DNA of 63,439 bases, counting the filler, from Reticulomyxa filosa (lineage: Eukaryota; Protista; Foraminifera), in the NCBI GenBank assembly GCA_000512085.1. It is 22 parts of 22 records of this genome, joined end to end, with 100 filler letters (N's around TTAATTAATTAA, not from the genome) between each part and the next. Parts side by side here need not be neighbours in the genome. Positions count along the whole stretch, not along the records: positions 1 to 3,908 come from ASPP01016975.1; 21 more parts are not named here. One strand, written 5' to 3'. The translations under genes and the position numbers were made by a program. How positions within the stretch are numbered: position 1 is the first letter of the stretch; each line of letters opens with the position of its first letter. Shown in pieces: positions 1 to 3,908 of the stretch. The notes below the pieces were generated by a model. It worked only from the letters and a program-made list of their open reading frames with translations. It was not told where the DNA came from and made no database searches.

Positions 1-17
1 AAAAAAAAAAAAAAAAG

Positions 18-438
18 AGATGTTTGGAAATAGCGAAAGACGACAAAAAGATGACATGGTGTCCAAAAGACTCCAATGATGCAAATTTTTGTGATGAAAT
101 GGAGCGAAAAGATTGGAGGGAGTATTTTGAAGACTTAAAACAATTGATTGGAGGACTGCCGAAGAATGGATATTTGAAAGACGAATATCAAAATAACAAA
201 ATACAGACTGCGGATGACTTAAAATGTATTTGGGCTGATCGATATGACGAAGATAACAGCAATACGTGGCTTTTGAAACTTCGAGTGATCTGTTCAGATT
301 CGTTCAAGCAAAACCCATGCAGCCAAGAGTTGAGAAATCCATATCTGCACGAATGCGTGGGAAAAAAATGAAGACAGTGAACAAGATAATGAGAATTACA
401 AATCAATCCAAAAAAAAGAATATTTCAACATAAGATTA
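18..438 (+). CDS. 5'-partial exon segment of the GTPase-caspase gene (PB1-like region), joined to 439 via a probable 1-nt homopolymer frameshift
   Basis: ORF 24-371 follows a poly-A...AG acceptor. The frame of the 439 ORF is open back to 334. Removing one A from the A-run at 362-368 gives ...HECVGKNEDSEQDNENYKSIQKKEYFNIRLMLELIKK. Confidence 0.6.
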
Positions 439-1770
439 ATGCTGGAGTTAATAAAAAAGGCAGAGGAAGCAGCATATGTAATGAAAGATCAAAATGTGAT
501 ACTGTTGTTGGGAGCCAGTGGAGCTGGGAAGTCCACCTTACTCCATTTCTTGGCTGGATCGACTATGGAGGAACAAATTGTAGACGGAGTATCCCATATA
601 GCCCCAGTGAAAATCAAAAATAAAGCATTGGCTAATGTTCGTGTAAGTGCAGGTGTAGAACCTGAGACACGATATATTACAGCTGTTCCCATCAATTTTA
701 AAGGGATGCCTATACTTGTAGACCTAGACAGTGTTGTCATTTGTGACAGTGTTGTCATTTGTGACACTCCTGAATTTGGAGATACGAGTGGTCCTGAAGT
801 TGATGTTGCCAATGGCCTTGGAATCATTCGAGCATTGCAAAATTGTAAAAGTGTTAAACCTGTAGTGTTGATTAGTTACACTGCCTTGGGCAATCGAATG
901 AACTGTGTCAAAGATTTAGCTCGTACGCTCGTATCTATTATTCCGTTCAGCGAAAATAATCTCTATGCATTCTCATATGTGTTTACCAAAATGCCTAAAG
1001 ATCAAAAACGATATATGCATGCATTTGCGAAGGACGCTTGCAATACATTTAAAAAAGAAGGAGATGAAACGATGGAACTTATTTTCGCAGATATTGCTAA
1101 AAAAACAAGAAAAAGAGTGATTGCACCGGATTTACTGAAAGATTCACCAAATGATTTGTTGAAGGAACTTTCCTATACAAATGATTTCATTCAAGAACCC
1201 AGAGAGGTCTTTCAACCCTTTGTTTCCGAAAGTTCTAAAGCAGCAGTTTATATACAAGTGCAAAAGCACAAAGAAGATATTTGGCTGGCTTATCAAAATG
1301 GAGATTATCGTGTCGCTAAAATAAAGTTAGATGAACTTACAGACCTGAATAATGTGTTGACACTTTCAACAATTGAAAATGAATACGATGATTGTGTGAC
1401 AAAATTGGCCAATGAATGGAATCAAAAATGTGAACGTGCCATGTCAATATTCAATCAACAAATTGCATCTCCACATCCGATAAGCGTATATGACGTATCA
1501 ATTTATCAGAAAGCTGTAAAGAAACTTATCTCTGCAGATGAACTACGAGTACATTTGAGGGATGCACTTTGTAGTGATGCTTTGATTAAAAACATCAAGG
1601 AACAAATCGAGCGTTTGATTCATGCAATTGAAAATGAGGATGAAAGTACATTACAAGTTTATTTGGATAAAATTGCACGAGTGCAAGACTGTTTCCCTGA
1701 ATTTTGTGATTATTACAGAGAAGCTTGTCAAAAGGTGAAAAAGAGATTAGGAAAAAAAGAGGATGTAAAA
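439..1770 (+). CDS. P-loop (TRAFAC, AIG1/septin-like) GTPase domain plus helical region; exon of the GTPase-caspase fusion gene
   Basis: G1 GASGAGKST, G2 Thr (PETR), G3-like DTPEFGDT and G4-like VFTK, followed by a long helical/coiled region. GT donor at 1771 is phase 0. Confidence 0.8.
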
Positions 1771-1840
1771 GTTGAGTATTGAATTTTAATTGTAATTATA
1801 TGCAATGATAGTTGATTTGTAACTATACAAATGAAAACAG

Positions 1841-2324
1841 AAATGGACGAAATGGTGGAAAGAAAAAAATGAAAAAGACAAAGAGGAAATTATTTCAAAA
1901 TTTGAACAATTATCAACTGATGATTTTGCAGTATGGTTGTTACAGCAAAGCAAATGGAAACTTGACTTAAACAATATAAACATATTATTAATTTATGGTG
2001 CAATTGGATCTTATATTGATTACCATTTTGCTGATAAAGTTTTGTTCTTTTTTTTTGTAAAAAGGCTCAATTACGAAAAGTTACTATCAAAAATAGGAAA
2101 AAAACAAAAAATGGATGAAATGGTGGAATCAAAGAGAACAAAAAGATAAAACAGAGATAATTGAAAAGTTTAAAACAATGACAAATGAACAATTTGGAGT
2201 ATGGTTATTAAATGAGTGCAAATGGAAGAATGGAATCACAGGAGATGATATCAATTCTATTCGTTTTTCCATTAACACTTATCTTGACTTTTTTATACCC
2301 GATCAAGACACAAAAGAAGATAAA
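1841..2324 (+). CDS. Two exons (1841-2038, 2097-2324), each encoding one copy of a ~65-aa Trp-rich repeat
   Basis: KWTKWWKEKNEKDKEEIISKFEQLSTDDFAVWLLQQSKWK aligns with KWMKWWNQREQKDKTEIIEKFKTMTNEQFGVWLLNECKWK. GT-AG introns 1771-1840, 2039-2096 and 2325-2389 are all phase 0 and preserve the frame. Confidence 0.75.
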
Positions 2325-2389
2325 GTTAAATATTGTGCAGTCTTTCAATCTTATTTTTGATAGAATAATGATAACAAAATATAAAATAG

Positions 2390-3364
2390 TTGACAGCATA
2401 TGTGATAGTGGATGAAAGAAAAAAATTGATAAAAATGAAAGAATTAACATTTAAAGAACTTCTTTGTCAAAGCTATTATTGCTTAGAACCAAAAGATTTC
2501 CAAAAAATGAATGATGAAAATTTAAAACTGCAATTGGTTGATATGAAAGATAATATGGTTGGATCTGATGAATCTGTGACGAAAGAATTTGAAGATAATG
2601 AACCCACATTTAAAATTATTTGGGCTCCGTTTCAACAATTTATAAAAATTGGAAAAACAAAAGTCATAAAAAATGCATTGGTGATAATGATTGCTATAAG
2701 TGAATATGATAATATAACATGGAATAATCTTCCTGGTGTAAAAGAAAATGATGTCACAAATTTCAAAAAATTATTCGAGCAAGAATTAAAGTATGATGTT
2801 GTATGTAATCAATCACCAAAAATGACAAAACAAGATGTACAAGCACTTTTGGTCAAAGTAATTGCAAATTATGAACTTCATCAAAACACACACAAATATG
2901 ATGGATTGATTATAATTATTTGTGGACATGGCAAGGACGGTAATATGTTGGTGGCAAGTGATGGAAAAGATGTGTCAATTGATAAAATACAATCGTCTTT
3001 CAATTGTAACGAAATGGAATCATTCAAAGATTTACCTAAGATTTTTATTATTGACGCCTGTCGCGGTGAAAATGCACCAAAATCGTATGAACATACAATG
3101 CGAGGAAAAGAATCTTTATGGGGCCATCAAGATGATGGATTTTTAATTATTTGGTCAACTACAAAAGGACACAGAGTAGTTGATTTGTCCTTGTTTAGCA
3201 AAAGTATGAATAAAATTGTCACGTCAAAATATAAAATTGGTTATCCGTTTAAACAAATGTTATATGATATTAGGACAGATATCCGTAGCAACAAAAGTGG
3301 CGAATGGTATTGTGTGGAAAGTCAAGACACAACGGATTATGACATCATCTTTCAACAAAAATAA
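2390..3364 (+). CDS. Caspase-like peptidase C14 domain with an N-terminal PB1-like segment; last exon of the fusion gene
   Basis: NALVIMIAISEY...LPGVKEND, catalytic ICGHG (His 2927-2929), IIDACRG (Cys 3059-3061) and p10-like FLIIWSTTKG. The ORF begins with TTG directly after an AG acceptor at 2389. Confidence 0.9.
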   Translation: MTAYVIVDERKKLIKMKELTFKELLCQSYYCLEPKDFQKMNDENLKLQLVDMKDNMVGSDESVTKEFEDNEPTFKIIWAPFQQFIKIGKTKVIKNALVIMIAISEYDNITWNNLPGVKENDVTNFKKLFEQELKYDVVCNQSPKMTKQDVQALLVKVIANYELHQNTHKYDGLIIIICGHGKDGNMLVASDGKDVSIDKIQSSFNCNEMESFKDLPKIFIIDACRGENAPKSYEHTMRGKESLWGHQDDGFLIIWSTTKGHRVVDLSLFSKSMNKIVTSKYKIGYPFKQMLYDIRTDIRSNKSGEWYCVESQDTTDYDIIFQQK

Positions 3365-3908
3365 AATGTTATTTTTCTTTTTTTACAAGAAATAAGCAAG
3401 CGTTCACTTGAAACTTTTGTCTTTTTTCTTCATTAAATTATTTTTCTTTGTAAAGTTGCAATTTGGTTTTGGATAATTATCAAAACAAAAGAACAAAATC
3501 TTCCGAAAATCTATATTAACTACTTGTTTTAAGAGCTGCAATATTTAAAGATTCTTTTAATAGTAATAGAGATGACCAAACCAAAGGTTTCAACAGCCAC
3601 AAATCACATTGACACTTTTAAACTTGTGAATATGCAGTGATTTTTGAATATCGCCTTTACATTTGTTGACACCTAATCCTGGTGTCTGTTCCAACAATAT
3701 TCTTTTGACTAATTTCAACAAAAATTAAGAATCAAATTATTTGTCCATTGCTTGTATTATTTTTCAAAACGTGCACATTTGTTAAGAAATGCAAAATTGT
3801 CAATAGATACGTATATTCAATTATCTCATTTCACAATTGATAGCCAAGCACTGAACAAATTGTGAAACATTGCCACAGCTTCATCAAAATATGACAGTTA
3901 AAAAAAAA

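Follow-up and report, generated by a model that had tools for sequence, protein, structure and literature searches.

A probable young chimeric gene in Reticulomyxa filosa that joins the head of a GIMAP-like GTPase to a caspase-like cassette

Caspase-fold proteases are activated by induced proximity. In metazoans, the platforms on which this occurs (Apaf-1 with caspase-9, NLR inflammasomes with caspase-1, and GBP1 with caspase-4) combine a nucleoside triphosphatase (NTPase) or sensor, an interaction prodomain and a proximity-activated protease.

Caspase-type proteases are barely known outside of animals. The foraminiferan Reticulomyxa filosa is a cited exception: its caspase homologues have been reported, and they have so far been used only as an outgroup, one of them serving this purpose in a published tree (Klim et al. 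2018, PMC5982838; PMC10959488; PMC10565124). NTPase-caspase logic in conflict systems is treated by Kaur et al. 2020 (PMC7159879) and 2021 (PMC8195603), who describe STAND ATPases, AP-GTPases, DO-GTPases and AIG-type GTPases, of which the AIG-type GTPases appear as effector or partner domains. A literature search recovered no published description of Kelch, Ras or W-PB1 (Trp-rich module plus PB1-like domain) architectures for the R. filosa caspases, and no published fusion of a GIMAP-like GTPase to a caspase.

Here, we describe a R. filosa locus that appears to be such a fusion. The window is a stretch of 63,439 nucleotides (nt), filler included, that joins 22 parts of 22 records of assembly GCA_000512085.1; positions 1 to 3,908 come from contig ASPP01016975.1. 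The locus occupies positions 18-3364 on the plus strand, and all positions below are in window numbering unless a contig is named. L001 to L009 are nine R. filosa paralog contigs used for comparison. On the evidence of sequence comparison, the locus is probably a real, young chimeric gene. We assign a probability of roughly 55% to the full reading: a single exon-shuffled gene, cut at its 5' end, that works like the other members of a W-PB1-caspase cassette family. Its features are as follows.

3-368, plus strand: upstream coding part in frame 3, with the end of an inter-domain linker, the second of the 'TWCPK' N-terminal domains and the first part of a low-complexity linker
362-368, plus strand: A7 run at which frame 3 shifts to frame 1, through a real lesion or through a sequencing error in the homopolymer
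439-1770, plus strand: exon 1, 444 amino acids (aa); G domain at ~487-1218, then the first ~180 aa of a helical stalk at ~1219-1770
511-537, plus strand: G1 / Walker A motif GASGAGKST, read from the sequence; the family consensus is GxTGxGKST
727-766, plus strand: perfect 18-nt tandem duplication of 2.2 copies (Tandem Repeats Finder, 100% matches), which inserts VVICDS in the strand before G3
763-774, plus strand: G3 / switch II, which reads DTPE (Glu codon 772-774); the family, including P0083 and P0126, has DTPG
1746-1753, plus strand: recombination breakpoint, at which the GTPase-family exon gives way to the final ~20 nt of the exon preceding the W cassette, with micro-homology ATTAG
1771-1840, plus strand: intron 1, 70 nt, phase 0, GTTGAGT...AACAG, with an in-frame TGA at 1780-1782
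1841-2038, plus strand: exon 2, 66 aa, Trp-rich module of type A, without an in-frame ATG
2039-2096, plus strand: intron 2, 58 nt, phase 0, GTTTTG...AATAG
2097-2324, plus strand: exon 3, 76 aa, Trp-rich module of type B, with an internal ATG at 2115
2325-2389, plus strand: intron 3, 65 nt, phase 0, GTTAAA...AATAG, with acceptor ATAG/TTGACA
2390-3364, plus strand: exon 4, 324 aa, PB1-like domain and Peptidase_C14
2390-2644, plus strand: PB1-like beta-grasp domain with a conserved acidic ESDE cluster
2681-3322, plus strand: Peptidase_C14 (caspase-like) domain, His 2927-2929 (CGHG) and Cys 3059-3061 (DACRG)
3362-3364, plus strand: stop codon TAA; homology to L002 and L008 extends ~20-30 nt beyond it

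The two halves of this locus belong to different families, and the point at which they meet lies inside an exon. In a three-way alignment, the locus tracks L007 (a GTPase paralog) up to ~1746-1750 and L008 (a cassette paralog) from ~1746-1753, with ATTAG in common. By BLAST, homology to L007 ends at 1746, homology to L005 (a second GTPase paralog) ends at 1742-1754, and homology to L008 starts at 1753. L008 (RFI_04718 and RFI_04717) is collinear with positions 1753-3384 at 84% nt identity, introns included, and the upstream partner of its cassette is an unrelated helical protein. The breakpoint is situated ~20 nt upstream of a conserved splice donor, and both the reading frame and the donor have been kept. 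A breakpoint of this kind is the signature of exon shuffling by illegitimate recombination, to which the alignments point here. In the course of events that we propose, the head of a giant GIMAP-like GTPase ('TWCPK' domain, G domain and the first ~180 aa of stalk) would have recombined at ~1746-1753 through the micro-homology, joining it to the last ~20 nt of the exon before a W-W-PB1-caspase cassette with retention of the phase-0 donor and frame. Once the three short introns were spliced out, the predicted protein would have 910 aa or more, rising to ~1,055 aa should the A7 shift prove to be a sequencing error.

The L008 copy has lesions of its own. Its PB1-caspase exon (L008:1550-3187) is broken by indels of 1, 2 and 1 nt and by a 3-nt insertion, and is annotated as two genes; in addition, an A6 run (A7 in the window) creates a TAA just before the conserved donor. 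L008 is thus either a dead copy or one affected by homopolymer errors.

The first-pass annotation had proposed a four-exon gene of 910 aa with GT-AG introns of 58-70 nt in a protist. All four exons are open at these coordinates (444+66+76+324 = 910 aa), comparison with paralogs backs all three introns, and every best match is from R. filosa. None of the matched proteins is identical to the products of the locus, so the contig would be one that is unannotated, or annotated differently, in its genome. The region is AT-rich (GC 25-41%), with ~0.10 stops per codon expected at local composition, such that the probability of an open frame arising by chance is ~1e-3 for the 66 codons of exon 2 and ~3e-4 for the 76 codons of exon 3. 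Reading through the introns leads to a stop after 3 codons (intron 1), 36 codons (intron 2, out of frame with exon 3) or 11 codons (intron 3); because each holds a stop or a frame shift on read-through, all three need to be removed. We infer that the locus is transcribed and spliced as modelled, on the basis of the paralog comparison described below. Intron 1 has two candidate phase-0 donors, GTAAAAG at 1765 and, 6 nt further on, GTTGAGT at 1771; both keep the frame, and their products would differ by Val-Lys. A Rfam scan of the window matched no RNA gene.

A search for longer caspase-side proteins indicates that a variable N-terminal domain followed by one or two W modules, a PB1-like domain and a caspase domain in a single annotated polypeptide is the standard architecture in R. 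filosa. Kelch fills the N-terminal position in P0231 and P0233-P0237, P0232 has a Ras-like GTPase there (Pfam Ras 5.5e-22 and C14 3.4e-18), and the order W, PB1-like, C14 is the same in 40+ paralogs by profile matches. Paralog introns were located by mapping annotated proteins back onto their contigs. The acceptor of intron 2 matches the annotated P0029 intron before the W exon (L001 3896/3897), while that of intron 3, before the LTAYV exon, is equivalent to annotated introns in L001 (4241/4242) and L002 (1600/1601); the spliced junction TKEDK/LTAYVIV agrees with the paralog proteins. Intron 1 is homologous from its donor onward to the intron upstream of the L008 W exon (81%). It is also homologous to a 79-nt intron of L006 (9898-9976), which would join a 392-codon Kelch open reading frame (ORF) in frame to a W exon. 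In L006:8722-11742, two annotated genes, one for Kelch (405 aa) and one for the W-W'-PB1-caspase protein P0058, probably form a single gene: this 79-nt GT-AG intron joins them in frame and contains the annotated Kelch stop. P0058 also seems to read through the intron equivalent to intron 2 of the locus.

Purifying selection is evident in both halves of the locus, to different degrees. Using a rough three-taxon split, the ratio of nonsynonymous to synonymous substitution rates (dN/dS) on the branch leading to the locus is 0.14 for PB1 and caspase (dS 0.41) and 0.43 for GTPase and stalk. The dS to the nearest contigs is ~0.4-0.6, the same as that among R. filosa paralogs.

This difference in constraint bears on a reading that we consider unlikely, in which the locus comprises two units: a decaying giant-GTPase fragment that ends at the TGA at 1780-1782, and a separate W-PB1-caspase gene that begins at the ATG at 2115, leaving exon 2 as untranslated sequence or a relic. 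The far stronger constraint on the caspase half (0.14 versus 0.43) speaks for it, and all of the lesions (frame shift, duplication and DTPE) fall in the GTPase half. Paralogs P0030 and P0034 are annotated from an equivalent MKWW/MEWW start, and in the automatic gene models of L006 and L008 the upstream gene terminates at a stop in or just before the homologous intron. Exon 2 argues otherwise: it is open for 66 codons (against the chance expectation given above) and conserved (dN/dS 0.36 versus L006), yet it has no start of its own, with ACG in place of the paralog Met codon, and therefore requires an upstream coding exon. The donor, acceptor and frame are all intact across 1770/1841, the longer annotated paralogs carry a sensor domain ahead of the W module in the same protein, and the dN/dS of the GTPase branch is still well below 1.

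Upstream of exon 1, frame 3 is open from base 3 to a TGA at 369-371, and frame 1 is open from ~340 to 439. Because frame 3 is still open at the contig edge, the 5' end of the gene is cut off. The ATG at 439 corresponds to an internal Met in the paralogs. The upstream part has homologs in the N-terminal regions of the R. filosa GTPase paralogs P0083, P0003, P0012 and P0018, with hidden Markov model (HMM) domain matches at E-values (E) of 1e-39 to 1e-44; against the giant GTPase family, the N-terminal domain matches at about 1e-37. A protein-atlas search with this domain returned only nameless clusters at low recognition, and a relationship to the PB1-like domain is unsupported (hhalign probability 1%, E 0.055 over 15 columns). 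In the L007 alignment, frame 3 is homologous through GKK and frame 1 from EDSEQD, with the locus net 1 nt shorter at 362-368. An addition of about 140 aa had been predicted upstream once the A-run frame shift was corrected, and ~145 aa are found. A short intron in place of the shift was rejected, because the frame is not recovered with any GT...AG pair at a credible intron length. This assembly has repeated frame shifts at A runs (an A10 run in L005; A6 in L008 versus A7 here), and for this reason the shift at 362-368 may be a sequencing error; the recurrence points to homopolymer errors. The edges of the contig (1-16 and 3901-3908) are also A runs, consistent with assembly breaks at homopolymers in an AT-rich genome.

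If the shift is instead a real lesion, it would block translation from the native start upstream of the contig. In a further reading, a rearrangement joined two gene pieces and the whole locus is a recent chimeric pseudogene, with a product that is not made or is non-functional and a caspase half too young to have decayed. We regard this as quite improbable. The architecture is unique among the GTPase members examined, the G3 glycine is lost, and the broken frame of L008, the nearest cassette paralog, indicates that dead copies exist in the family. However, the PB1-caspase half has accumulated a branch dS of 0.41 at a dN/dS of 0.14 and retains 324 codons without a stop or indel, compared with four frame-breaking indels in L008, and the A-run shifts in L005 and L008 favour homopolymer error as the source of the 362-368 shift.

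A number of other observations weigh against a single working gene. The three lesions (the 362-368 frame shift, the 727-766 duplication and the G3 Gly to Glu change) are all in the GTPase half, and the dN/dS of 0.43 for GTPase and stalk exceeds the values for its paralogs (0.30 and 0.34). Compared with the canonical family, the members of which are 1,000-3,400 aa and often end in SecA_DEAD, the stalk is cut short. The internal ATG at 2115 could start a separate W-PB1-caspase protein, in the manner in which P0030 and P0034 are annotated, and some of the paralog evidence comes from automated gene models on an assembly that is fragmented. Finally, the caspase, W and PB1 profiles match none of the 177 giant-GTPase members examined (150 best representatives and 27 first matches), making this fusion the single case among them. 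The paralog contigs also carry no second copy of the fusion: L003, L004, L005, L007 and L009 have no W or caspase, and L001, L002, L006 and L008 have no GTPase.

A join found once could also be produced during assembly or library preparation, if two unrelated loci were linked where a short contig of low coverage is rich in A. The contig measures just 3.9 kb and has A runs at its ends, the sequence around the junction is A-rich and of low complexity, the junction was not found on a second contig, and the perfect 18-nt duplication could be an artefact as well. Nevertheless, we judge such a chimera to be very unlikely: the source families share ~5 nt at the junction, which is far too few for an overlap assembler, the join keeps both the reading frame and the splice donor, and each half is 16-24% different from every other contig seen, which means that the locus is more than two known loci copied and stuck end to end. 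A chimeric read would be a possible source. The comparison as a whole supports our preferred reading, in which a modular caspase-like family has recently gained, by exon shuffling, a member whose GTPase-head partner is new.

The GTPase half belongs to a family of giant proteins. An exhaustive HMMER search identified 1,132 relatives, 174 of them below 1e-30 and many 1,000-3,400 aa in length, from R. filosa, Rotaria and Logan assemblies; a word search also matched Blepharisma and a Chlamydiota bacterium. Exon 1 is 66% identical to P0083 over 438 aa (E 5.9e-170), and, taken with the upstream ORF, it matches the corresponding regions of the giant GTPases (N-terminal domains, G domain and proximal stalk) at 50-66% identity. 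P0083, a canonical R. filosa member, has two 'TWCPK' domains, a low-complexity linker, a G domain and a very long stalk. A SecA_DEAD-like domain is present in the C-terminal part of P0084 and of the Logan-assembly members P0092 and P0098. The locus keeps only the head of such a protein, without the long distal stalk or the SecA_DEAD-like ATPase.

Exon 1 was modelled with AlphaFold2 from an alignment of 26 homologs (predicted local distance difference test [pLDDT] 88), and the model has a G domain followed by a long helical stalk. This is in agreement with the P-loop GTPase and helical stalk of the first-pass annotation, the Walker A motif being read directly from the sequence. That annotation had further suggested a relationship to GIMAP and GBP proteins, which stands in part. 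In a Foldseek search with the model, GIMAP7 ranks first (1.3e-6), followed by GBP5, GBP2, GBP1, GIMAP1, GIMAP2, Toc34 and atlastin; however, the scores of Era, HflX and other TRAFAC GTPases lie within 1-2 Z units. Pfam AIG1 has no match in exon 1 at E up to 1, and Pfam matches to the G domain are at the P-loop level only (ABC_tran, RsgA_GTPase, and MMR_HSR1 at 0.066). The model thus suggests a TRAFAC G domain with a fold closest, by a small margin, to GIMAP and then to GBP/atlastin. With regard to the TRAFAC switch motifs, G1 is present, while G3 departs from DxxG and G4 reads TKMP (family TKxP) instead of the canonical [NT]KxD. As G4 is TKxP, the guanine specificity of the giant GTPase family is putative only. 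The 18-nt duplication is private to this copy, being absent from L007, L005, L009 and all family members, and pLDDT is low at VVICDS in the exon 1 model.

Several other members of this family have unusual structures. In L004:2033-11406 (plus strand), three annotated genes in a row (508, 910 and 1,418 aa, with SecA_DEAD in the third) appear to be pieces of a single giant GTPase gene, and homology to exon 1 crosses the boundary between the first two. L005:1-3214 is a GTPase paralog with frame shifts, one of which is at the A10 run (1029-1038), and has an inverted second copy of the stalk region at 2577-3200 on the minus strand. P0008, from Rotaria sp. Silwood2, has a weak match to RickCE (a CE-clan protease) N-terminal to its G domain, with a Pfam E of 2.6e-5 that is below the curated cut-off; P0020 and P0026 from the same organism align with P0008 across this RickCE-like region. 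The giant-GTPase head may therefore pair with differing enzymatic domains in other lineages.

Downstream of the head are two Trp-rich repeats, as previously noted from the sequence: the two exons are 41% identical (E 3e-19), and the residues W, K, W and K are invariant in an alignment of 21 Trp-rich copies. Exon 2 has 77% aa identity to the L008 W exon and exon 3 has 89% aa identity to L008. The folds of the W and PB1-like parts were taken from a model of a natural paralog, P0034:1-161, which is 67% identical to the locus over the PB1-like part. In this model, the Trp-rich module is a four-helix bundle and the following segment matches a PB1-type beta-grasp fold in a fold search, which upholds an earlier proposal of a PB1-like segment before the protease. 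The acidic cluster IIESDE (Asp >90% conserved) is at the expected OPCA position. Pfam PB1 has no match in exon 4. The Trp-rich module has no Pfam match and no usable protein-atlas match, and fold searches were dominated by the beta-grasp, leaving the module without assignment to a known family or fold. In P0070 (RFI_22594), a Kelch propeller is fused straight to C14 without W or PB1, indicating that this prodomain is not obligatory.

Exon 4 matches more than 50 R. filosa paralogs at 40-79% identity and contains a Peptidase_C14 domain (73.3 bits against a Pfam cut-off of 21.4, E 3.1e-20, profile positions 4-225 of 233). The best Protein Data Bank (PDB) matches of the domain are caspase-3/6/7 and caspase-8; caspase-3 is matched at E 3e-6 with the single sequence and 1.7e-10 with the family profile. 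The catalytic dyad is intact, as had been claimed, with CGHG aligned to SHG and DACRG to QACRG of caspase-3. Klim et al. 2018 group R. filosa proteins with animal caspases (PMC5982838). The earlier description of a caspase-like effector holds for fold and dyad but does not extend to a strict caspase. By alignment, the position of Arg179 (caspase-1 numbering; Arg64 of caspase-3) is Pro, in the family motif NLPxVK, and that of Gln283 (the Gln of QACRG) is Asp, while the SWR loop containing Arg341 is a gap in the family-profile alignment. An ungapped reading that aligned Arg341 to Asp was dropped, since the profile alignment places a gap there. Because the Arg/Gln/Arg residues that bind a P1 Asp are not conserved, we call the domain caspase-like; a P1 preference other than Asp, possibly basic, is suggested by these substitutions. 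The prodomain also differs from that of a strict caspase (CARD/DED or short), consisting of a Trp-rich module and a PB1-like beta-grasp, and Pfam gives no Death-fold match ahead of the protease.

PB1 and CIDE-N domains form head-to-tail polymers. In the mechanism that we propose, the variable N-terminal domain (a GTPase head here, Kelch or a Ras-like GTPase elsewhere) would act as a sensor or switch, the Trp-rich modules and PB1-like domain would form a prodomain that draws molecules together, and the caspase-like domain would then be activated by proximity, probably cutting at a P1 residue that is not Asp and may be basic. We infer assembly via the prodomain from parallels with the cassette family and caspase biology, and the substrate preference from the alignment of the S1 residues. 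As W and PB1 are common to the whole caspase family, whatever the N-terminal partner, the prodomain is no less likely than the GTPase to be what drives assembly. GTP-driven oligomerisation as the activator of the effector, which the first-pass annotation had favoured, is not supported for this copy: the loss of the switch-II glycine (DTPE) together with the 6-aa VVICDS duplication just before it make a GTP-switch role doubtful, although such a role is possible for an ancestral or intact version. The G domain may instead be a nucleotide-independent or locked dimerisation or binding module.

The neighbourhoods of the cassette genes on other contigs look immune-like. A 1,795-aa NACHT-HEAT STAND-type NTPase gene (L006:12442-17829, minus strand) and a gene for an 873-aa protein with a weak nSTAND3 match (L001:108-3181, minus strand) each adjoin a caspase-cassette gene, and WD40 repeat genes are found near caspase cassettes in L001 and L002.

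Tentatively, R. filosa, which is a giant cell with many nuclei, may run a lineage-specific cell-death or immune system, in which caspase-like proteases with a novel type of prodomain (the Trp-rich four-helix module as adaptor plus a polymerising PB1-like domain) are coupled in cis to interchangeable sensors and do not cleave at Asp. Were this so, the locus would be a sensor swap by exon shuffling caught in the act, and a one-chain counterpart of the GBP-caspase and apoptosome platforms with an evolutionary origin independent of animals. The caspase-type proteases of R. filosa prove to be multi-domain, consisting of sensor, Trp-rich module, PB1-like domain and protease; the apparent capture of a GIMAP-like GTPase head by one member of the cassette family makes proximity-activated proteolysis in a protist directly testable, and the locus, its breakpoint mapped, is a clean case of exon shuffling that can be dated. 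The damaged GTPase switch limits the weight of this single locus, and the model rests on comparison.

With respect to known systems, the locus is closest to the two R. filosa families from which its halves appear to derive. It has the same cassette and intron positions as the R. filosa W-PB1-caspase proteins (with Kelch: RFI_04124, RFI_31453, RFI_12261 and others; with a Ras-like GTPase: P0232, 'ras-related protein Rap-1A'), at 50-80% identity and with D[AV]CRG and CGHG in common; in contrast to those proteins, it alone among the members examined has a giant-GTPase head as partner, joined recently and inside an exon. Its likeness to the giant GTPase family (RFI_21122 and RFI_03864; Rotaria, Blepharisma and Chlamydiota) is in the N-terminal domains, G domain and proximal stalk, with E down to 6e-170. 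Whereas members of that family go on for a 1,000-3,000 aa stalk, the locus leaves the family at ACQKVKKR for the caspase cassette, and it alone has DTPE for DTPG and the 6-aa duplication. The resemblance to GIMAP/AIG1 proteins (GIMAP2 and GIMAP7), and more loosely to GBP/atlastin, is more distant: there is no AIG1 match, TKxP replaces [NT]KxD, and identity is 13-16%.

The metazoan initiator-caspase platforms share the logic proposed here, and the protease groups with animal caspases. It differs from these platforms in having all components on one polypeptide, a W and PB1-like prodomain in place of CARD/DED/PYD, and an S1 pocket without the residues for Asp. The STAND NTPase-C14 fusions of prokaryotic and fungal conflict systems, as described in PMC7159879 and PMC8195603, have the same combination of NTPase switch, caspase-superfamily effector and small adaptors, with modular swapping of parts. 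Relative to the systems described there, the R. filosa locus would fuse a GIMAP-like TRAFAC head in cis to a caspase-like domain, in a eukaryote and by exon shuffling.

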